Below, one piece after another: positions 1 to 14,339 of a DNA stretch of 64,000 bases. Each line of letters begins with the position of its first letter. Within the stretch, counting starts at the first letter, position 1. The position numbers and the translations under genes were made by a program. Source of the stretch: Takakia lepidozioides (taxonomy: Eukaryota; Plantae; Bryophyta). The stretch spans positions 74,648,001 to 74,712,000 of the forward strand of contig CM060732.1 in assembly GCA_030704615.1 (NCBI GenBank), given 5' to 3'. Below the pieces are notes generated by a model. The model was not told where the DNA came from and did not search any database. It worked only from the letters and a program-made list of their open reading frames with translations.

Positions 1-1274
1 ATAAGTTCTTGCTGATGCCTTTTGGGCTCACCAACGCACCCACGACCTTTAGCACGCTAATGAGCAGCCTTTTTCAGAAGTGGTTGGATGACTTTGTGAT
101 CATGTACATCGACGACATCTTGGTGTACTCGAAAACAAAGGAAGAGCACCTGGAGCACCTCAAAAGGGTGTTCCAGAAATTGCGGGAAGAGAAACTGTAC
201 GTCAAAGCTTCAAAATGCGAATTCGGGGTCACAAAAGTGGAGTTCCTAGGGCATGTGATTACACATGATGGGATTGAAATGGATGACAGATTAGTGAGGG
301 CGATTTTGGACTGGGAGCCTCCGACTTCGATCCCGGGAGTGCGATCCTTTCTAGGACTCGTCTCCTATTACCGAAAGTATGAGAGAAATTTCGCCAAGAT
401 CGCGGGGCCGTTGTCGGACCTTCTGTATGTCCAAGGTATGGGTATGGAACACCTTTTGTGCCCAAGCTTTTGCCGAGTTGAAGCATCGGATGGCGGAAGC
501 TCCGGTCCTGAAAATCCCGGAGTTCGACCGTCCATTTGAAATTCATACAGATGCATCGGACTTCGCAATTGGGGGTGTACTCATGCAGGATGGACGTCCA
601 GTGGCTTACGAAAGTAAGAAACTGAATGAAGTGGAGCGACGGTGGATTGCGCTCGAGAAAAAAATGAAGGCGATGGTGCATTGCCTTGAGCTTTGGCGCC
701 ACTATGTTGGTTCCAACCTGGTGAAGGTGTTCACGGACAATGTCACGGTGAAGTATTTTGCCACGCAGCCTAAATTGTCCCCAAAATAACTTAGGTGGCA
801 AGACACTTTGGCGGTGTTCGACGTGGATATTCAGTACAAACCGGGACGGGACAATGTGGTGGCTAATGCTTTAAGTAGAAAACAACAGCTCATGTTGGTG
901 TACAGGGGCGAGACGGCGCTCCAAAAGAAGATCCGGAAGGCTTACCGAAAGGATGAGATGGCGAAGTCTGTGATGCGGGACTTGAGGATGGGGGTTAAAT
1001 CGCAGTTCCACTTGCATAATGGACTGATTCGGTACAAGGGAGGGATCAGAAATAGTCTCTTGAGAGAATGTCACGATGGCCCGCTTGCGGGCCACGGCGG
1101 AGCCAAGCGCACCGCGGCACTCTTGAAGAAAGAGTATTTTTGGCCCAAACTGAGGGAGGAGGCCGAGGAGTATGTCAAGACATGCACCACATGCCAACAA
1201 ATTTAACCGGAGCGAGTACAAAAAGCAAGCAGGGTTGTTACAACCCTTGCTGATTCCAGAGGGGTCTTGGGAAA
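1..1274 (+). mobile_element. Ty3/Gypsy LTR retrotransposon pol, 5' part (RT, RNase H, integrase zinc finger); degenerate
   Basis: ORFs 9-539, 379-789 and 808-1206 contain MPFGLTNAP, YIDDILVYS (RT), TDASDFAIGGVL (RNase H) and the H..H..C..C integrase zinc-binding motif; frameshift and stop codons present; interrupted after PEGSWE by the CACTA element. Confidence 0.95.
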
Positions 1275-1483
1275 CACTACAACAGATGAGCGTTTTTATG
1301 ACTTCACATATGACTATTTTTTCAGTCTTATATGCGTTCATGACTACATCACTCTGTAGTGAAAAAAACCCTGTCATAGCGACTAGTCTTTAGGACTGCG
1401 TTTTGCAAGTCATATCCATGACTGCTTGCGTGGCACCTGGAGTCCTGCTGCAGAAAGGGTTGCAGTCACAACCTTATGACTAA

Positions 1484-1900
1484 TATATGACTACATTGTC
1501 TGTTGAGCGCTGCGTACATGGAGAGGCTTCAGCGGGACACGTGCGCCACTGCGCAAGCGACACGTCATGCATTCGTCAGGGGATTATATGACTATATGTC
1601 TGCAAAGTGATGCCTACATGGAGAGGCGACGGATGGACACGTGCGCCACTGCGAATTTGACATGTCACGACTTCTTGCCATAATCATATGACTACATGTC
1701 TACACAGTGATGCCTACATGGAGAGGCGCTAGCGAGACACGTGTGCTATGGCAGATTTCACACGTGGTGACTACATGACTCGCTCATATGACTACAGGGA
1801 TGTCTACATGGAGAGTTGTTAGCGGGACACCTGTTGCACTTGAGATGTGACATGTGGCACACAGACAAAATATATGACTAGCATATATGACTACGGATCT
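1484..1900 (+). repeat. CACTA subterminal tandem repeats (~100-bp unit, about 4 copies) rich in ATGACT motifs
   Basis: Recurring ATATGACTAC...TACATGGAGAG...GACACGTG units; ATGACT/AGTCAT motifs also cluster next to both TIRs. Confidence 0.8.
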
Positions 1901-2451
1901 TTACACGTGGTGAAAATATGGATAAAGAATGTCGTGTCATATACTGCCACGTGTTCTGGTTTGAGCAAGAGTGATGCCACGTGTCATCAAGATTGTTTTC
2001 CGAAATAGTTTATATTTTTCATGTTCATATTTTATTTTTTAGTTTTCATTTAATATTTAAAAGAACAGGGAGATTGCAGCCTTGGATTTTTTTTTAATGG
2101 TATTATTTTTAATATTATTATTTAAAATGAAAGTGAATTAAATGATTTAAAATCTTCATTACATGGTGAAATTCCAACATGAAAACAGAATGGATCCCTC
2201 CTGCATACTATCAACCACAAGGAAAATATAAATAGTCAACTACAGGGCAATACAAGCCCTATAAATCACATTACAAAAATCCAAATGAGACCAATATCCC
2301 AATGGACACCTCAAAAGCCACAAGGTCAAAAAATCCATGCCTCAAAAGGCCCAGCCAAAAACAAGCAAACCCACATATGGGCTGAATTGTTGTAGCTAGT
2401 ATGTTCTAGTGCTATTAGAATCAAGAACTCTGTTAAATAGTGCAATACTGA

Positions 2452-5400
2452 CTATCCCTTCCGCAGCTCCATAAGTTTCAGTAACTTTAGACTCTAAAGT
2501 GTTGTCTGGCCAACCACCTGTCCCAACTCGGTCTGTTTCCTAACACCATTCACATATGGTAGAGGGGTGTTACTGACACATGCCTCTTTGATGTACACAC
2601 AGGCATAATCAAGGGGCACAGCAGGGTACCCGTAACCCACCACAGCACCTTGAAGAGCAACAATCAGCCCTACTCCACATTTCTTGCGTTTGGAGTTCAC
2701 ATCCAACAGCCGAACCTCGTCACCCACCCTGAAATGTGATCCCAACTCCACACAAAAAAGAACACAATGTGAAAACCCATGACATACACACGACTAGGAC
2801 ACTCAACATTTGTGAGTTAAAGAGAGCCCCAAGGTTGGAAAAAATAAAACAAACAAGACAACGGCCTGGACTTACTCCATTTGCAGTCTCCAGTGGTGGT
2901 GAGACCTCTTTTGGGGGCTACTCGCCGGGTCGACACTCTTGCCCCTCGTCTGTACCGGCTTGTCGACAATATCACCTTTGTTTGTCACAAGTTCCTGTGT
3001 CACAGACCAGAGAACAACCAGGAAAGCAATGAGCAAACATGAATAGTGAATAGAAACAAAATCCAAGTATGAATCAAACAAAAAAAGCCAACATGAAAAG
3101 CTGCAAAGAAAACCTAGCATTAATCAAGCAACCGAGGAGAAGCATCCAGGAAAACAATGCAATGAATGAACCCACAAAAATGTAGCCTCTGGAGCACTGT
3201 CAGAATGTTTGTACCTTCACAGTAGCAGTGTTGTATGGTTGTTGTCCGAAAACAGGCTGAGACTCCAAAAACTTGGGAATACTGGCAGCTTTCGATGCCT
3301 TCCACAAGAAAGGCCACAACACCTCTGTCAGATACTCATCAGTTGGTGAATCTGGTTGCACCTTCCATGGCTCTAGAAAAATCCCACTGAAGGGAGGATT
3401 GTTTGCCGCCTTTCTTGGTGTGTCGTCAACAAAAACAGTGTCATCATAAGTCCATTCTGGCCAGTCTGCCCACACTGTAGACAAGTTCTTGAAATATAAT
3501 GGCTTTGAATCAGACCCCTTACGGCATGGGAGGACTGGATCCTCGTCACAGTGAAGGGCATCCCACTGGAAAACCAGGTTAGTGTGGGCTGCAAAAATAT
3601 AGTCCACCATTGGGAAGAAGTTGCGAGCTTGGCAACAAGACCACACCGCCACCTCAAAGTGTTCAAAACACTTTTGCAAAAAGTCATAACAGCGTGGTCT
3701 CAAAACTACCATCTTCTTGCCACACATCTTCCCCACAAAACCTTTGGGAAGGGATGCAGGCCCATTAGCAGAATGAAAAGATTCACATAACAGACCATTT
3801 AAGTCCAGAATTAGTAAATGCTTCCTCGTTGATCCAGGAAGTAAACTGACATTTGGCTTCAACATGTGAGCAGGAGAAATTAAAGCAACATGCTTGTTTG
3901 CGCGCGCTCACAGTATACGAAGGCCTTGCCGTGTCAGGATTTGCATTCCCACGTCCCGCCATGTCCGACGCCCCTGGACTGCTACTGCCTTTGTACGTGG
4001 CAAGGGCTAAATTTCCACGTGTACCTCACAGCTGGCCTTCCCTGTATCCTGCTGCTGCTCGGTCAAATTCAAAAGATCATCAGTGACAGGAAGACATAAG
4101 GGCTTAGAGTGAGCACCAGTTACCGTCTGAAATTGGGATTCCAAACATTTTGATACTGTCACAGCAGACGTATCCATCGTAGATGTCACTGGTCCTGCGC
4201 CTGGTAGATTAATCCCCAATCTGGTCACAATGGCTTTCTTGTACTCAATCATACTCTGCATCTGTAATTTTAATTCTGCCATGTCACGTCCTTGTGATTC
4301 CACCAGTTTGTCCAAGCCATCCATCCTGCCAACTACTGTAGAATATGTGAGACTTCCCTCGTGCCAATCCATGAAAACTTGCCCAAGTATGAATCAAACC
4401 AAAAAAACCTAGCATGAACAACCATTGGAAAGAAAACCCAGGCCAAAAGCTGTGAAAAAAACCCTAGCAACCTATGATGCAACAACCACTCTAGCAAACG
4501 TGGAAAACACACTTACCCGCCTGTCACTCCCAGCTGACAACCGTGACACTGAACCCTCTTGAATTTCATATAATGTAGGAGGGCACCCTGATAGTGTTTC
4601 CTACAAATTAATCCATGCCACAAACAAACCCATGCCACAAGTCAGTAAGCAATGTGAGGGCTGACTATATACACATAGCAATTCAATGAGGAACAAAATA
4701 CAGAGTCGTGATGATACCACTTACCAAGCGTGCTTCCACCATTGCCTTCCCACCACGGCCAGTCTTGGTAGGATTCAGAATTGCACCATTTGCCTTCTTC
4801 ATGTTGCCCGACACTTTGTGGAACACCTCTGTCTGCCAGTAACTTACAAGCTTGTTCCATACCTCATCAGATACAGTAATGGGTTTCCCCTTACCACCCA
4901 ACCACGCAGTGTGTGCTTCATAACGCTGGCTCTTCATTATTCTGCCAATTGTTTGTTTTAGGTGGAAGTCTTTTAACTCGTGTGGCGTATATGAAAATAG
5001 CTTAGCTAGGTGATCTCTGATTTCATATACAACTTCATCAGGTTGGTTGTTGATGGCAAGGGAACAATCTAGCTTGCGATAAGCCTGTCCTTTAAGGGCA
5101 GCGTGCCATACATTCCGGGTCTGACCATACGGGGCTCCTTTGAGGTTCGTCAAAATCACCGTGGGAGGAAGACCTGCAGCTATTCTCTCTTCCTTGACCT
5201 TGGCAGCTTCAATTTTGGCTGAGCTATTAGCCCTCCTTAAAGCATTGGTTCTATCATTCTTTGAAACGGCACCCTCCCCTCCTTCAGAGACCTCCGTGCG
5301 CTCAGGAGAATTCAAAGCAGGATCCTGCCAAGTAGGGACTGGTGGCCATGGCTGTTGGCCAGAAGGCCGAGGACCATACTGGCCATACTGTCCATAAGCA

Positions 5401-6640
5401 GGAGGATATTTTGGTGGCCTGCCACCCCCATAGCTATTAGGGGGTGGCAAATATGGTGGAGGAGAATACTGGCCATACTGCCCATATGGAGGAGCACCAT
5501 ATTGACCCTGACTATACTGAGTGCCAGACTGTGGGTACTGAGGCATACCATAATAAGGTGGGGATACTGGTGGCACAGAACCCACAACGTTGGGAGAGTT
5601 AGGGCCACCTCCTCCGTTCTTGTGGGCGCCATCTCCATTGCTAGCAGCAGGGATCGTGGATCCAGTGCGCTTGTGCTTGCCCTGAAAAGAAATTCCCCCA
5701 GTACAATGTGGGTGATTACACATACATATAGGCAGCAAGCAGCAAATCCTTGAATTCAGGCAAAACAAACTGGAAGCACATATCATTTATAAAGACAAGA
5801 TTACCCAAAACTCAGTATGATCTTGGGCAGTAAATCTCCCAAATTTGATTGGCCCCAATGATGTCCTCCCAGTACATTTTTGAGCCCTCTTAGGTATGGG
5901 GTGTTCCTGAAATCCATAGCAAGAATTCAAATGGACAAACCTGATGGGTCCATGAGAAGTATCCCTCCAAGTTTTACTGATATTCTGGGTGCATAAGTAA
6001 CCCAAGTATCTCTATAAGTAGCCATTGTAGCTTAGTACCAGGACGTTGGTTTCATGGGGCAAAGAATTTGAACACACCTGAAGTCTACATTGGCCTGACA
6101 TCATGCCTTTGGCACTTCAACTTGTCTAGTGGAAATCATTTGTGATTGTGCCTTGGCTGACCCTTGCATTGTCCAACTTCCATGTCTTGACAGACATACC
6201 CTATCTCTTCGTGATTTTACCAAAAACATACATAATTTGAATCATGGTCATTGTGAAGAACTATAACTCACAGACGGAGAAGGTGTTTGTAGTGTAGATG
6301 ATGGGCATTTTTGTCCTGTGACATGAACATGGGCATGTTCTCCTCGGCTTGCCGTGGCATCCGCCGACGACGCACTCGCCTCGCACTGGCGTGGGAGGAG
6401 TGGATCGTCCTCATCGTCCTCAGAAGAGCCCTCATGCAGAATCGTAGTCTTCATCGTCTTTAGTCTGGCACTTTGCCTTGCAGGACCCACATCCCTAGTT
6501 TTTTCCTTTGGAGCGCGTGGCTTGCGAGGGCGATTTGCTCCCGCAAGCCTGCACAAACACCTCCATGACCTCCCTTTCAAACAATCACAAACAAATGTAA
6601 GCATACATACCCTAATACTCTTAAGCCTACGCTGAACCAC
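2452..6640 (-). pseudogene. CACTA second gene (TnpA/ORF2-like), multi-exon: low-complexity N-terminus, Ptta/En-Spm-like region, coiled coil, FCP1/NIF HAD phosphatase-like domain, C-terminal Tnp1/En-Spm-like domain
   Basis: Exons inferred from GT-AG sites: 5681-4725, 4600-4517, ~4370-3912, 3845-3215, 2994-2876, 2728-2452. Junctions 4725/4600, 3912/3845, 3215/2994 and 2876/2728 keep frame. In-frame TAG stops at 4007-4009 and 2494-2496; acceptor near 4370 and the 5' exons (~6250-6640) unresolved. Confidence 0.7.
3215..3845 (-). CDS. FCP1/NIF (CTD small phosphatase-like, HAD superfamily) domain exon inside the CACTA
   Basis: Motifs LLILDLNGLL (motif I), RPRCYDFL..CFEHFEVAVWS (motif II), YFKNLSTVW (motif III Lys), TVFVDDTPRKAANNP (motif IV). 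Confidence 0.9.
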
Positions 6641-7150
6641 AGCCGTACCCTACCAGGACGTAATGCCTGCCCACGAATGACGGCGGACATCTCCCGCCTA
6701 ATGACACACCCTCCTCAAACCTAATCGTCACTCACTGCATGTTGTTTGCCTCTCTGTTTGTACAAATCGCAGCTACTCGCCCCCATTTGTGCTATGAAGC
6801 TTATGATCGTTGTAGGAAGGTTAGAGGATAAGGCAAATCGCAAGTTTAGTGGGTGGGTATCCAAAGTCAGGAACTAAACTCACCCATCTATCGACTGCTT
6901 GAACGTTGCTTCCACCTCCTTTATGGCAGCAATCCGGCGCTATCGGAACTTCTCGTACTCAGTGAGAGGGACTGTCACTTCGAAGACCTTCCGCTTCACC
7001 ATGGACACTCAGAAACGATACTTATAGTATACTATAGATATAGAAATAGCACATTGGCAGCTGGTGCAAAACTAGAGACAATGCACTGTGCGTAGCATGC
7101 AAAGAGGGAAGGGGTGACGTTCAAAGCATGTACAGTGCAGTGGCGAACGG

Positions 7151-10100
7151 ATGCGTAGGCGTACAATAGATGACCGTCTATGGCGAATGGAAGAAGCTTA
7201 TGCCACAAGGAATGGGCATACAAAAATGCTATGCAACTGCGATGAGTGTCATGGAGGAAAAGTACTGTTGTTGGAAACAGTGAGGAATCATTACATGATA
7301 CACGGGAGGGATCCTCTTCTCCAACGCTGTTCTCTTCCGGTAAATCGCCACTTTCCCTTCAGCACTTTAGTTTGAATTTTGAATGCAACGATCATCTTCT
7401 CCACATGTCGACATTTCGTTGGGTGATTGTAGTCAAGAAGTCATAAGATACAGACGTGACTATGACTACGCCACTTCCGTTATCACTTTAATTAATGCAC
7501 ATGTCGTGTTTTCATTGGTCATGTGTAGTCATGTAGTCATATATGACTAAGTAAGTGACTGCAACTATGACTTCAATGGTTACAAATGTCGTGTTTTGAT
7601 TGGGTGTATATTCATAAGATACATACGTAAATATGACTGCATCACTGCAACGTCACCGTGCCTCCTATGTCATTATATGAACAAGTGTCACATCGTTGTT
7701 GGTCCACTCACAAGATGACTATTGGGATGCAGGGATGTGAATATTCAGATGATGAAGACGAAGGCCCTGCGGCACAGCGGGAGCCCAATGTCATAGAGAA
7801 CGCAGATGAGAGTGGTGGATTGGAGGTAGAAATGCAGCGTGCATTGCAGGAAGCGTTTCTATTTGCAGATGCAAACAGAGAGGACCCCATTCATGGTGGA
7901 ACCGATCACACATTTGCCGATCATGATGATGATCTCGACGATTCCGGAGACAATGAATTTGATGAGAATGCTCACCTACACGTTGATCCCGAGCATGATA
8001 AACTCTTCCGAGCGTCGCAATGTCCACTTTTCGAAGGGTGCTCCATCAGCCGGCTGCAAGCAACTTTGACGTTGCTGAACGCATGCACTACCCACAAGTG
8101 CACCAATGCATTTGTGGATGAGCTTCTGGGATTGTTGCGTAAGAGTTTTTTGCCTAAAGAGAATTCATTGCCGAAAACTCACTATGAAGCAAAAACCATG
8201 ATTGCCAAGATGGGATTGCAGTACATGATGATTCATGCCTGTGAGCGTGGTTGTGTACTCTTCCGTGGGGAGTATGAGAATGTAGACATTTGCCCAGTGT
8301 GCCGCAGTTCCCGTTACATTCCAGGTCGTGGAAGTGTGCCCAAGAAAGTATTGCGACACTTCTCTGTCATTCCAAGGTTGAAACGTATGTACCGATGTAA
8401 ATCGATCGCTAACCTCATGACATGGCACAACAGACATAAGAGCCAGGATGGGTTGGTTCGACATCCAGCTGATAGCAAAGCATGGAGACACATTGACACC
8501 ACATTTGCGGATTTTGCTGCAGAGCCACGATCTCTGCGATTTGGATTGGCCTTAGACGGTGTAAATCCCTACGGAGCTCAATCCACAAGTTGGAGCACAT
8601 GGCCCATTCTCTTGGTCAATTACAATCTGCCTCCGTGGTTAATGACCAAAAAGTTCTTTGTCATGTTAGCGCTACTGATTCCTGGTAAGGAGTCTGTTAC
8701 CTCGGACAACGTAGATGTTTACCTGATGCCCCTAGTGGAAGAGCTATTGGAACTATGGAGAGGGATTGCAGCTCATGATGTTTCCCGTCCTCGTGGTCAA
8801 CGCGAATTCACACTAAGGGCAGTGTTGATGTGGTCAATCCATGACTACCCTGCATATGGTTTGTTCTCACGTCAAGTGACGAAAGGTTATGCTGGTTGTC
8901 CAGCTTGTGGACCCGGGGTGACTTCACAGCAGTTACACACATGTGAAAAAATTGTTTTCCTAGGCCACCGAAGATTTTTGGCCCGCAATCATCCATATAG
9001 AAGGTCAAGAATGTTCAATGGCGCTACTGAGCATGGAACTCCTCCAAAAACGCAGACTGGAACACAAATCAAGGACCTTGCAACAGCTCGCACTGCATGG
9101 GTGGAAAACGGAGGGACGCCAGATAGCAGGACAGACCCAGCAAAAACTCATGGAGTTAAGCGATTGTCAATTTTATATGTCTAACCTTATTGGGAGGTAA
9201 TTCCTTCATGGCCTTTAAATTGGCTGTGTATATTTTTGCGTTTTCTGTTTAAATTGTGATGAGTAAATGCTCAATTGCTTATGTGTTCATTTTGTAGGGT
9301 CTCCTCATCCGCCACACGTTTGACGCAATGCATTGCGAGAAGAACTTGGCTGAAAATACTATTAAAACTATCTTTGGTGAGAAAGACACATTGAAAGTTC
9401 GCCGTGATTTGGAGCTACTTGGGATGCGCCCGGAATTGTGGCTACAATGTGATCCTGACAGAGCAGATACGTTAATTATGCCTCCTGCCCCTTATATCCT
9501 CACTGAGGCTGAGTTACAAGTCTTTCTGGAGATTGTGCAGAACTTGAAAGTGCCAACAGGCTACGCATCAGCTTTCAAAAAGCATGTGGTGAAGAAGAAG
9601 TTGTCAGGCATGAAATCACATGACTTTCATGTGCTCATGCAGCAAATTATACCGCTTGCTATCCGTGGGCTCATGCCAAGTGGTCCTCGAAGGGCCATTT
9701 TGCGAGTATGTCGTGTATTTAAGAAGTTGTGTGCAAAAGTGGTGAATCATGTAGAGTATGAGGAATTGAGAACTGAAGCAGTTCTCACTCTGTGTCTTAT
9801 AGAGAAGGAGTTCCCACCATCATTTTTTGATGTGATGACACATCTGGTTGTTCACCTAGTGGATGAGTTGTACTTATGCGGGCCCGTAGCATCTCGTTGG
9901 ATGTACCCCATGGAGCGGACAATGAAAGATATGAAGGGCTACGTAAGAAACATGGCAAGGCCCGAGGGGAGCATGGCAGAAGGATACCAATTTGAAGAAG
10001 CATTGGGTTTTTGCACAGAGTATATGGCAGGATTTGATGAAAGTGTACATCCCCCGGCATGAACACAACAAGTATGGTGTCTTTTGATTGTGGAGTCTCA

Positions 10101-10712
10101 TCTGTTTTCCAGCACCAGCCCATTACCAACAATTCAGGCAATGACATGGAGGAACCTACAAGATATGTGGGTCTTATAAGGGAGATTTTGCAAATTGACT
10201 ATGGCCAAACATAGCCTATAGTGTTTTTGTGTTCGTGGGTACGGGCGAGTCGCGTGGGTCGTCAACCTATGTCAATGAAGCAGGATGATGCTGGCTTCAC
10301 ACTTGTCAATTTTAACCGTATGCTTCCACCTTTTGAGCAACCTTTTGTGTTTCCTGGCCAGGTTGATCAAGTGTTTTTTTCTGATTGTGTGAAGGAGCCG
10401 GGGTGGAAAGTCGTCCTGGAGAAGAGCCCCCGAGCACGTAGAGTGGTCTGCGATATATCAATTGATAATGATGATGTGGCGGAAGTGGAAGGATTGTTAG
10501 CCCCACAAAGACTAGAGGAGACTGTGGTTACTGATGGCCCAATATGCAGCCGAGCGGTACCGGTTACTCCAGAGCAGGTGGCCTCCTTGTACCTCCGAGC
10601 ACCCCGTATACGTGGTGATGATGTTCAGCCAACCCTTGGACAAGATGAAGTCTGTGATGAAGACAGTGATACATGTAGTGACCCAGACATAGATGAGGAT
10701 GATGAAGATTAG
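7151..10712 (+). pseudogene. CACTA transposase (TnpD/Tnp2; transposase-associated, Transposase_21, DUF4218- and DUF4216-like regions), spliced and degenerate
   Basis: CNCDEC...VRNHYMIHG exon (7151-~7339); IHACERGCVLF, HPADSKAW, LALDGVNP, YNLPPW, HDYPAYG (7658-9184); MHCEKN, MKSHDFHV, WMYPMER, PEGSMAEGY (9328-10062); QPFVFPGQVDQVFF...GWKVVL (10221-10712); TAA at 9182 and a deletion near 10050. Confidence 0.95.
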
Positions 10713-10809
10713 ATATGCGCGATTTGTGCACTCCAATTATAGACCATGCATGATAGTTTAAGGTGGTAACACTCCCTTCGCATTCCCATTAAGATATCAT
10801 GCTTGGACA

Positions 10810-12480
10810 TTGGATTTTATGATCAATTATGGAGTGCTTTCCTTTCAGCACCCTTTATTCATTTGTTGTTGCAATTGGCTTTGGACCAACCCGTGCTGGT
10901 ACCATTGCCATGGGTTCTGCCTGCAATGTTTTCTTGCCATGGATTCGGCACACGCCACAAAAGGCCATCCAGACCATCCTCTGGAAATGCTCCAATGTTG
11001 TTTCAAACATCTCCACATTGCAATGGATACAACACTGACATTAGATGAGTGAAAGTGAGACTAGACCTCCAGCCAGCCGGCTTTCCCACATCAAATTGAA
11101 GGGGATCTGTAGATTATAGATAACGGCTGTTGCCTTCTCAATGTCTTTTCCAATCACCTCTGCAATGAACTGGGGTATAAGATCCTTCAAATCACAAGTT
11201 TGAGCATCACGCACAAGCCACTTACGGGGATAGAGTTTCCAATGCGAACTATTGGTCTTTTATTGATAGCATTGTTGTAAAATACATGGACCAACATGGT
11301 CAATTTCGGGAATGACGTATAGTACGCTTTCATGTACTATGTAAGCATGCAACTATGTACCAGTGACGTGGCTTGTTCGCCACTTAACCTATTTGCCCAT
11401 TCAGCCAGCTCCACATTGTCATGGATTTTGCATGCTGGATTGTGAGGCCATCCACACCGTCCTCTAGAAATGCTATCATGGGGTTTCAGCTATGTCCACA
11501 TTTCCCTAGATTATGCCTGCACGAAGCAAGGCCAACTGCATTCAACACCCTCCACTTTATTATAGTATTGCAGCAACATTCAAAGCACTTCAATTTGTAT
11601 CCATCGAAAACATCTAGGCTGGAAAAAGACATTGTTGCAACAGAACTTAGGAAAGTACTTCTCCCCTTCCACTACACACGTGAAATGAAAGAAGCCAACC
11701 AACAGCATACCAGCCAAGAAAATATTAAACCAGCCAAGAAAAGAGCCAATATATGCAGTGAAGGTCGACACTAAATGAAACTTATCCAACACTTACATTA
11801 GAGGAGGGAAGCTAAGTCTTACCTCCATAAGCTTGCCCACATCAAATTTGGGAGCTTTCAGAATTTCTCCTTTCCGGTTGAATGAACTTGGCTACAAGAT
11901 CCTTCAAATCGCAAGTTTGAGCTTCACACACAATGAACTTGCAGGGATTGAGCTTCCAATGCGAACCATGAGTCTTATATTGATAGCATTGTTGTAAAAC
12001 ACATGGACCAACAATGACAGTATCTGGAATGACATATAGTACAACATGCCGCTTCCAGTTGACCATCTACCCATGTAGGTTTTTTGTACCTATCCTTCCA
12101 CAGGGAATCATAGGTAATGTGGAGCTTGAAATCCAGCCCTCTTGGATGAATCTGGACCCACACTCTATCCCTGCTCCTTCAGCTATCCATGCCTCTGACA
12201 GCCTACAATTCTACCAGCAAACACCCCAACCATACTGGTGTGGAGTTCTTCCCCAAAACACCCCAACCCTACTTATCACAATCTGAAATGCATCTGCTTC
12301 TCTCTGTAGTCCAACAGGCATTCGCCTTTTTGTCTCCATTGTCCCACCATTGGGGTCGGAAAGTGTTCACCCCAAAGCTTCTCCTCACCTCTATTATATG
12401 TTTTTGGATACTTCCCTGCTGCCACACTGGCAGTAACTTGCCAAAGTCACTCCAAACCACCACAGATGTACCCAACGACC
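10810..12480 (-). pseudogene. Unrecognised passenger gene in the CACTA with an internally duplicated ~50-aa domain
   Basis: ~11170-11330 and ~11885-12045 are diverged copies; one minus frame is conserved (VLYVIP....VGPC.LQQCYQ.KT..SHWKL.P.K..V..AQTCDLKDL...FI) with synonymous third-position changes; several stops; gene limits approximate. Confidence 0.5.
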
Positions 12481-13332
12481 TAACTTACATAATTCAATAT
12501 GCATCTTGCGGCCGAGTCTGATGAGAGGGCAACACAGGCTGAAATAGGTTGAAGAAGAAGGTGCCCTACCACATTGTCCTTGACCTGTCCTGACCCATGG
12601 AGGATTTGACCGATGACCTCTTGTGTGTGCTGCTTGTGTCTGTAGTCAGGTAATGTCGGATTGGTCTGTCAGATCGAACCACTACGGCGTAGATGAGTAG
12701 TCAGAGATTGAAACAAGCTTCCTAAGACCAAGCTGACTCTCCCAAGAACGGCGAGCTCGCTTGTCCTCGTCTCGTCTCGTCCTCCTCTTCTCCTTCGTGC
12801 ATCATTTGCTCAACGCCTCCATCCCACGCCCCTGCATATCATGCTATCATCGCGTTCCATCCCTCAGCTATGTGGTGTGGCGCAGGAGACAAAAAGACGC
12901 CAAGTCCGAGCCCTCCTTTCTGTTCACGATTACACTAATGGGCAACCTTATTAGCAAAAATTTTAACTTTTTAAAACCTAATGGGCAACCTTATTTGCAT
13001 TATATGTGCCTTCAAAATGACACGTGTAGTGATGTAGTCGTATAAATAGAGCTCTGAAACCATCTTCAGTCATGGAGTCATAAGATTCCATGAAACGTCG
13101 TCCACGTGTAGTCAAACATATCACACTAGTCATATAAACCATCCCTGTCATCATGGTCAACAATGTTTGACCAATGCTCCCTAACTTTCCGGAGTCATGT
13201 AGTGATATCCATTACTACAAAGTCATAAAACTAAAACTGTAATGCATTTCAGCGCTCTGTAATCATGTACCTAGTGCAGTTTTTATGACTCCGCCAAAGC
13301 CGTAGTCCTAAAAATGCTCATCTCTTATAGTG

Positions 13333-14339
13333 AAAGTGTCTCGATGGATTTCATGACTGCTATGCCGCTGTCAAAAGAATTCGATGCAATCATGGTGGTG
13401 GTGGATAGATTCAGTAAAATGGGTCATTTCATCCCCACCACAGAGATGACAACGGCGCACGGGGCGACTTTACTTCGCCCACGTCTTCAAGCATCATGGA
13501 CTCCCGAAGGATATTGTCTCGGACCGCGATCCAAAGTTTACAAGTAAATTTTGGAGGGCACTTTGGAAGAAAATGGGGACGAGGCTCAAGATGAGCACCG
13601 CCTTCCGACCTATGACGGACGACCAAACGGAAAGGGTGAATTCTGTGGTGAAGCAGATCTTGCGGAATTATGTGTCGGCAGACCAATCAGACTGGGTGGA
13701 GCACTTGGATGAGGCAGAGTTCTCTTATAATAACACAAAACACTCCGCAACGGGAGTTTCCCCTTTCATATTGGTCTATGGAAAAGCACCTCTAGTGCCG
13801 ACAAGTTGGGCCGCCCAAGACGTCGAGGAACCGGCAGCAGCAGCGGCGGTGCTGGAAGAACGCGAGCGTTTGTTGAAGCTCGCAAAGTACAACATTGCCA
13901 AAGCTAGGAAACGGTATGAACGGCAGACGAAGTGAGTCCGAAGTTCGTACCTCCGTATGCGGGACCCTTTCGCATCCGGAAGGTTATGAATGATGATGTG
14001 TATGAATTGGAGCTGCCGGCAAATAGCAAGGTGCATCCGGTATTCCACGTCTCCTTCTTGAAGCCTTACTTCAAAGATGAAGCGCATCCGAATCGGCATC
14101 AAGTGTTGCGTCCGCCACCTGTGCTGTTGGATCATGAAAATGAACCTGAGTACGAGGTGGAGGCAGTGCTTAAATCGAGGAGGTTCAAGAATCAAGAAAC
14201 AGAGTATCTCGTGAAATGGAAGGGCTATCATCAACTTGGGTGCGTGGATGCAACTTGGGTGCGTGCCTTAGAAATGGGAAATGCATCTGAGGCGGTTGCA
14301 GCTTTCGAAAAGCGACCTCAAAAGCGGAAGAAGCGTTGA
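13333..14339 (+). mobile_element. Gypsy integrase core, GPY/F region and chromodomain (chromovirus), 3' part of the interrupted element
   Basis: SMDFMT...[14 protein letters not shown]-like DDQTERVN, YAGPFRI, HPVFHVSFLKP, chromodomain EYEVEAVL...EYLVKWKGY...ATW. Confidence 0.95.

Follow-up and report, generated by a model that had tools for sequence, protein, structure and literature searches.

A NIF/FCP1-homology domain in the accessory gene of a CACTA transposon of Takakia lepidozioides

We analysed a stretch of 64,000 nucleotides from Takakia lepidozioides (Bryophyta), here called the window, which corresponds to positions 74,648,001 to 74,712,000 of the forward strand of contig CM060732.1 (assembly GCA_030704615.1); all coordinates below are positions within it. 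The window contains a complete CACTA (En/Spm-type) DNA transposon of about 12.06 kb, which carries a TnpD-type transposase gene on the plus strand and, on the minus strand, an accessory gene, ORF2, modelled as a chain of eight exons. Exon 6 of ORF2 encodes a complete NIF (FCP1-homology, FCPH) domain whose relatives are plant host proteins, and the acquisition of this domain is real and probably shared at the level of the transposon family. A first-pass annotation, made from the sequence letters, had proposed a phosphatase domain spliced in frame into a TnpA-like gene, and its claims are taken up below where the results bear on them.

Limits of the CACTA element

The limits of the transposon were set by its terminal inverted repeats (TIRs), its target-site duplication (TSD) and its transposase domains. 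The features that define it and its site of insertion are the following:

1275-13332, no strand assigned: CACTA (En/Spm-type) transposon, from the TIRs, the AAA duplication and the flanking gypsy Pfam domains
1275-1302, plus strand: left TIR, beginning CACTACAACAG; its 28 nt read CACTACAACAGATGAGCGTTTTTATGAC
13305-13332, minus strand: right TIR, beginning CACTATAAGAG on the minus strand; its reverse complement reads CACTATAAGAGATGAGCATTTTTAGGAC
1308-1894, minus strand: subterminal repeats with the motif GTAGTCATAT; additional copies at 7460-7640 and 13034-13208
9-536 and 808-1203: left flank of the gypsy host, RVT_1 and Integrase_H2C2 respectively (Pfam)
13932-14336: right flank of the gypsy host, SH3_Tf2-1 and Chromo (Pfam)

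The left TIR matches the reverse complement of the right TIR at 24 of 28 positions, and both begin with CACTA. The TSD is 3 bp long, with AAA at each end of the element. The host of the insertion is a chromovirus-type gypsy element, the transposon sitting in the integrase of its pol gene, and when the element is removed together with one AAA the integrase frame W-E|S-V-S-M-D-F becomes continuous. Subterminal repeats of the GTAGTCATAT type gave 16 matches against 3.1 expected, a number reached in 0 of 100 shuffles. With CACTA-starting TIRs, a 3-bp duplication and a Transposase_21 domain, the element belongs to the CACTA superfamily. The earlier proposal that the NIF exon lies inside a TIR- and TSD-bounded CACTA is thus upheld by the 28-nt TIRs, the AAA on both sides and the restored integrase frame, and the window provides a full-length reference copy of the family, though one in which ORF2 is disabled.

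Exon structure of ORF2

The eight exons of ORF2 all have GT-AG borders, and their phases are mutually consistent:

7002-6884, minus strand: exon 1 (E1), putative and tentative; ATG at 7002, GT donor, phase 2 fitting E2; in-frame TAG at 6942-6940
6548-6272, minus strand: exon 2 (E2), AG and GT borders, phases 2 to 0, no stop; basic/acidic, of low complexity
5681-4725, minus strand: exon 3 (E3), Q/G/Y/P-rich region followed by the TnpA-like core
4600-4517, minus strand: exon 4 (E4), 28 codons; the related CACTA L001 has the same small exon in the same place
4357-3912, minus strand: exon 5 (E5), helix-prone; in-frame TAG at 4009-4007
3845-3215, minus strand: exon 6 (E6), 631 nt; complete NIF/FCP1-homology domain with the motif DLNGL
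2994-2876, minus strand: exon 7 (E7), linker of 119 nt
2728-2452, minus strand: exon 8 (E8), C-terminal beta-rich domain; TAG at 2496-2494, family stop at 2454-2452

All searches with ORF2 were run exon by exon; at the junctions only the three-base codons were inspected, and the joined product was not used. The three consecutive junctions said to keep the NIF exon in frame (3912/3845, phase 2; 3215/2994, phase 0; 2876/2728, phase 2) were confirmed in position and phase, with canonical GT-AG borders. E6 and E7 together form a cassette of exactly 750 nt that is entered and left in phase 2, and E5 joined directly to E8 is also in frame, with CTG as the junction codon. As for the span of 2452-5681 previously given to the gene, its exons were found, but the end at 2452 is reached only by reading through the TAG at 2496-2494. 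An alternative reading of 4025-3912 in frame 0 was rejected, as it has no fitting donor-acceptor pair and another copy has CAG where a TAG closes frame 1; with this CAG, at 4009, the frame read before the NIF exon is decided, and it is that of the phase-2 junction 3912/3845. Among sequencing runs, the stretch was matched only in a small one that looks like DNA; two runs that may be RNA contain almost none of it, and no splice joints were seen.

Two further observations concern the region around E5. A piece of 65-90 nt in E5 (window 4022-4112) is all that three contigs (depth 19-37) from what may be an RNA run of this species match, at about 90% identity; on both sides of it the contigs continue into unlike sequence, and they could come from a different family or from a host gene that contains the same piece. 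Introns 4 and 6 (window 4383-4438 and 3063-3114) share a 56-nt T/G-rich stretch of 84% identity (blastn E 3.5e-7), which flanks E5-E6 and may be the trace of a rearrangement.

Fold and catalytic motif of the NIF domain

The open reading frame (ORF) at 3203-3865 on the minus strand matches the Pfam family NIF (PF03031) with an E value of 1.2e-17 and 64.5 bits against a cut-off of 21.8, over profile positions 2-156 of 160. An AlphaFold2 (AF2) model of the exon, made with an alignment of host relatives, reached a predicted local distance difference test (pLDDT) score of 89. The top Foldseek matches of this model were CTDNEP1, SCP1-3, Tim50, UBLCP1 and Fcp1 (E 5e-10 to 1e-6), with template modelling (TM) scores of 0.61-0.68 for SCP, CTDNEP1 and Tim50 and about 0.5 for the longer Fcp1 chains, at 17-22% identity; judged on sequence only, the closest of the solved structures is that of UBLCP1. 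The exon therefore models as a haloacid dehalogenase (HAD)-type FCPH fold of the SCP/CTDNEP1 type, and the full FCP1/NIF domain that had been placed at 3845-3215 is supported both by the nearly full-length Pfam match and by the predicted fold.

This fold is shared with the active enzymes SCP1/CTDSP, FCP1 and CTDNEP1 and with the non-catalytic Tim50. In contrast to the DxDx(T/V) of HAD motif I, however, the transposon domain reads D-L-N-G-L, in which the first Asp is present, the second is replaced by Asn and the Thr/Val by Leu. The Lys of motif III and the DD of motif IV are kept, with K119, D140 and D141 conserved with the host relatives, and the set of retained catalytic residues is thus intermediate between that of the active enzymes and that of Tim50. 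The replacement of the general acid/base Asp (Asp+2) by Asn makes a canonical phosphatase doubtful. The same Asn is found in about 92-100% of the nearest host relatives and is invariant in a 56-sequence alignment, and nearly all host relatives carry D-[LVI]-N-G-[LVI] in place of DxDxT, which identifies DLNGL as a trait of the subfamily and not as decay. Tim50 illustrates that the FCPH fold can serve as a receptor without catalysis. The first-pass annotation had suggested a DNA-tethered phosphatase or a phospho-binder, and the residues at the active site make a phospho-binder or a non-canonical enzyme appear the more defensible half of that suggestion.

Origin of the NIF domain

To collect relatives of the NIF exon, 1.84 billion representative proteins were searched exhaustively with HMMER at E values up to 0.001. 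This returned 1,417 relatives, the best of them 34-43% identical, and those that bear a name belong to plant hosts, namely Ginkgo, Sphagnum, Macleaya, Coptis and Vanilla. Near-identity to a host gene, as a recent passive capture would leave, was therefore not seen among the representatives searched. The mean identity of the transposon domain to the host proteins is 35%, against 48.5% among the hosts themselves, and the phylogeny against host NIF proteins, which had been proposed as a check, gave it a long end branch (1.08 against a median of 0.24). It nevertheless keeps 26 of the 30 positions (87%) that are conserved in at least 90% of the host relatives. Among the positions fixed in the nearest host clade, 33 of the 38 that are conserved family-wide are kept, against 5 of the 19 that are conserved in the clade only (Fisher p 1e-5). 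The combination of low identity, a long branch and retained core residues points to an old, constrained acquisition rather than a recent passive capture, and would be expected of a domain that evolved for long while its fold was constrained. Together with the in-frame cassette, these values (identity of 43% or less, 26 of 30 conserved positions) also favour the earlier view of an integrated module over that of a randomly captured fragment.

The host proteins of the DxNGL subfamily, annotated as 'NLI interacting factor', 'FCP1 homology domain-containing' or 'HAD superfamily' (for example Ginkgo Gb_27773 and the tandem-NIF proteins of Sphagnum), share with the transposon domain the Pfam family, the motif and the 26 of 30 core positions. 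As in the transposon, the domain stands at the start of the ORF and can be intronless; in Sphagnum, one host gene of the subfamily consists of a single unbroken ORF, and a single-exon NIF domain in the transposon thus fits capture, at the level of DNA, of a gene without introns. Architectures were scanned in 70 long relatives, in which NIF occurs singly, in tandem, or together with DUF724, Agenet, CCCH, Torus, RRM, a GeBP DNA-binding domain or PMD. These partners hint at nuclear, chromatin or RNA-related roles of the host subfamily. In contrast to the window ORF2, however, none of the 70 contains a transposon domain, including Transposase_23 and Transposase_24. The remaining ORF2 exons had no phmmer match in the best 150 of the NIF proteins, a metagenome scan found no close relatives of the transposon NIF, and a profile scan yielded 80 host-type NIF loci, 0 of which had a TnpD or ORF2 neighbour.

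The TnpA-like core and the last exon

The first-pass annotation had placed a Tnp1/En-Spm-like domain downstream of the NIF domain, and neither that domain nor the order was recovered. The last part of E3, which lies upstream of NIF, alone gave a signal of Transposase_24 (PF03004), with E values of 3.6e-4 to 6.9e-4; its 20.2-21.1 bits fall below the gathering score of 28.7. The match spans no more than positions 2-41 of the 138 in the profile, the remainder being expected in later exons, which were searched separately. E8 had no Pfam match even at an E value of 10, and Transposase_23 (TNP1/EN/SPM, PF03017) was not encountered. The suggested HMMER comparison with NIF, Transposase_23 and Transposase_24 was thus clearly positive for the first, below cut-off for the third and negative for the second in this exon-wise form.

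In tblastn, E3 matched ORF2 of the related CACTA elements L001 (E 2e-10) and L005 (E 5e-8), at the same position and on the same strand relative to TnpD. Judged by this similarity, ORF2 is the second gene of the CACTA element and homologous to ORF2 of its relatives. When E8 was compared with the C-terminal exons of the relatives, which are of the DUF8039 (PF26133) type, the alignment was at the level of motifs (GD.V.LL ... LG..VGQ..LW), with a weak hhalign score (E 0.015, probability 3%), and its AF2 model was of low confidence (pLDDT 52). E8 as Transposase_23 was rejected; a relationship of E8 to DUF8039 may exist. A word-indexed protein search with the NIF exon and the TnpA-like core returned no matches, a result that says little since the search was limited by length. 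In the ESM Atlas, taken as a source of leads only, the NIF exon led to NIF-only clusters and the core to unnamed streptophyte clusters with a minority of Transposase_24.

Transposase gene, divergent layout and related elements

The transposase gene was recovered in pieces, all from Pfam matches:

7151-10712, plus strand: TnpD-type transposase gene
7151-7375, plus strand: Transpos_assoc-like part, E 0.004
7658-9184, plus strand: Transposase_21 (PF02992), E 8.6e-73
9328-10062, plus strand: DUF4218, E 4.6e-36
10221-10712, plus strand: DUF4216, E 3.3e-06

Its Transposase_21 domain is 50-57% identical to public Transposase_21 proteins, one of which is from the liverwort Riccia sorocarpa and many from environmental assemblies. 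ORF2 on the minus strand and TnpD on the plus strand are divergent, head-to-head, in the window element as in L001, L003 and L005, whereas the layouts described for En/Spm and for Arabidopsis elements are head-to-tail or alternatively spliced. The putative start codons in the window, 7002 on the minus strand for ORF2 and 7151 on the plus strand for TnpD, are separated by about 150 bp.

In L001, L003 and L005 the gene corresponding to ORF2 is likewise made of several exons, lies on the strand opposite to TnpD, points to the left TIR and ends in a DUF8039-type exon, and none of the three has a NIF domain inside the element. The lack of NIF in these relatives, taken with the 750-nt in-frame cassette, argues for a two-exon insertion before the last exon that took place only in the lineage of the window family. 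With En/Spm TnpA and plant CACTA ORF2 the window gene shares its place as a second gene beside a Transposase_21 TnpD, the short subterminal repeats, a weak Transposase_24-like N-terminal core, a helix-prone middle and a small beta-rich C-terminal exon. It differs from TnpA and from the three related ORF2 genes in carrying NIF, and its Transposase_24 match lies below the cut-off. A survey of CACTA ORF2 in angiosperms described only two added domains, Transposase_24 and Peptidase_C48 (ULP1), and called ORF2 open to intrusions (PMC8978399); NIF/FCP1-homology is not among the domains added in the elements of that survey. The first-pass annotation named no earlier description of a phosphatase fusion, and the literature searched yielded no paper joining CACTA or TnpA with NIF, FCP1 or a phosphatase; the fusion of NIF with a CACTA gene thus seems to be undescribed.

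Host-type domains were also met in or near the related elements. A NIF ORF of host type (motif DLNGIL) at 6-680 on the minus strand of L003, the same strand as L003 ORF2, was rejected as a part of that element, as it lies 2.2 kb beyond the left TIR (L003 TIRs at 2912-2936 and 13771-13795); its position may be a coincidence or a hint of how a capture could start. In two related CACTA lineages an ORF with a SET domain (PF00856, E 3.9e-11) stands directly upstream of the Transposase_21 ORF. The window element has no SET domain, and the two SET versions are 56-58% identical, representing another chromatin-type host domain in this CACTA clade:

L005 5819-6178, plus strand: SET-domain ORF
L006 975-1334, plus strand: SET-domain ORF
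L007 1109-1468, plus strand: SET-domain ORF
L002 8893-9363, plus strand: SET-domain ORF

A model for the NIF cassette and its alternatives

The account that we favour, with moderate confidence, is that a host-derived NIF cassette was inserted in an intron of the ancestral ORF2, was long constrained and spread with the family, and that it likely acts as a phospho-binding or slow, non-canonical module. Its source would be a host gene of the plant DxNGL NIF subfamily and its landing site the intron before the last ORF2 exon, in the ancestor of the transposon family; a long evolution under constraint on the fold-defining residues would then have accompanied its spread. By analogy with TnpA, whose behaviour is established (see also PMC13547354), the ORF2 protein would bind the TAGTCA-type subterminal repeats and self-associate, and this binding would bring the NIF domain to the ends of the element and to the promoter region between the two divergent genes. 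With the nucleophile Asp, the Lys and the DD kept, the domain would most likely be a phosphoprotein-binding module or a slow, non-canonical phosphatase and not a fast SCP1-like one, and its candidate nuclear targets are the carboxy-terminal domain (CTD) of RNA polymerase II (Pol II) or a chromatin or silencing factor. Among the small FCPH proteins of Arabidopsis, CTD phosphatase activity has been shown only for SSP4, SSP4B and SSP5 (PMC8774115). The more specific proposal is that a host-derived, DNA-tethered domain, CTD-phosphatase-like or phospho-CTD-binding, lets the transposon act at its own ends on Pol II or on a silencing factor regulated by phosphorylation, and so promote its transcription or escape silencing; this we regard as decidedly doubtful.

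Several points weigh against the favoured account. The window copy of ORF2 contains three in-frame TAG codons, at 6942-6940 (E1), 4009-4007 (E5) and 2496-2494 (E8), one of them just upstream of the NIF exon, and the gene is thus not intact as had been supposed; this copy would be dead for ORF2, and its nonsense codons appear to be of the C-to-T type. DNA contigs from the small DNA-like run of the same organism are 95-99% identical to it and read CAG for the TAG at 4009 and TGG for that at 2495, while carrying stops of their own at 5519 and 6346. Multiple copies, which the first-pass annotation had suggested looking for, are therefore present, a point that speaks for the account, and their differing stops indicate that several members of the family are decaying independently and that the frame of their ancestor was open through E5 and E8. 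Substitutions among the copies, another of the suggested comparisons, look near-neutral in the exons (14 nonsynonymous, 6 synonymous and 4 stop changes), a pattern expected after insertion and thus without information on selection in the active lineage. Furthermore, the E4/E5 acceptor (4357) is weak and makes this the least certain junction of ORF2, and the splice model as a whole is a prediction from sequence logic. The constraint test takes the nearest host clade to stand for the true donor, and the domain could also stem from a later capture, out of a divergent host paralogue beyond those sampled. Finally, the fusion was found in no other species among the long NIF proteins, the related CACTAs and the metagenome scans, and the function of the NIF domain in the transposon is one that we infer throughout.

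The broken window copy, the neutral-looking variation, the purely predicted splicing and a donor beyond the host genes compared would also suit a neutral passenger, that is, a captured host fragment that was exonised in frame by chance and amplified with the family, its conserved residues being due to the recency of its capture from a divergent host paralogue outside the sample. CACTA elements commonly carry captured gene fragments and extra ORF2 domains (PMC8978399), which also speaks for such an origin. It is opposed, however, by a whole NIF domain that is delimited by exon borders and shows no truncation, by a two-exon cassette that is exactly in frame, by the low mean identity to the hosts at which 87% of the conserved positions are yet kept, and by the long terminal branch, and we consider a neutral passenger unlikely, although it has to be taken seriously.

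A second alternative concerns the product rather than the origin of the cassette. NIF, linker and C-terminal domain could be made as a separate protein from an internal transcript, starting at the in-frame ATG (3865-3863) that precedes the acceptor by 18 nt, or the cassette could be an alternative pair of exons giving two isoforms, as would be permitted by the in-frame passage from E5 to E8 and would recall the alternative splicing known from En/Spm (see also PMC13547354). However, donor 3912 and acceptor 3845 fit in phase, and with the CAG of the other copy at 4009 the frame is open from E5 straight to the donor, so that a separate or alternative product appears quite improbable. Slimmest of all is the chance of a working SCP1/FCP1-like enzyme dephosphorylating the Pol II CTD at the element, for although the fold and four of the five catalytic positions (nucleophile Asp, Ser/Thr, Lys and DD) are kept and some Arabidopsis SSPs are proven CTD phosphatases (PMC8774115), the general acid/base is Asn both here and in nearly all of the nearest host relatives, the literature as far as searched shows activity for no member of the DxNGL subfamily, and the fold can work without catalysis, as described above for Tim50.

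Little is understood of the accessory proteins that DNA transposons encode, and few host-derived additions to CACTA ORF2 are known (Transposase_24 and the ULP1-type protease). A complete FCP1-homology domain with a conserved core, set in frame in the ORF2 of a multi-copy family, would represent a new type of module carried by transposons, and the known members of its domain family act on the Pol II CTD and other phosphoproteins. If the more specific proposal above, held to be doubtful, is true, a module would have been domesticated by a transposon from its host, which is the opposite of the usual direction, and within this CACTA clade the SET-domain ORF of the related elements would then illustrate that strategy a second time. 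ORF2 would also offer a testable candidate for a transposon that tunes its own transcription or counters silencing, and a natural experiment by which to study the DxNGL NIF subfamily of plants, so far uncharacterised.

Other features of the element and its host

The gypsy host (window 1-1274 and 13333-14339), with reverse transcriptase, RNase H, integrase and chromodomain, is split between the zinc-binding domain and the catalytic core of its integrase. In the non-coding 3' part of the CACTA element, a direct repeat of 162 nt with 84.6% identity occupies window positions 11164-11325 and 11881-12042.

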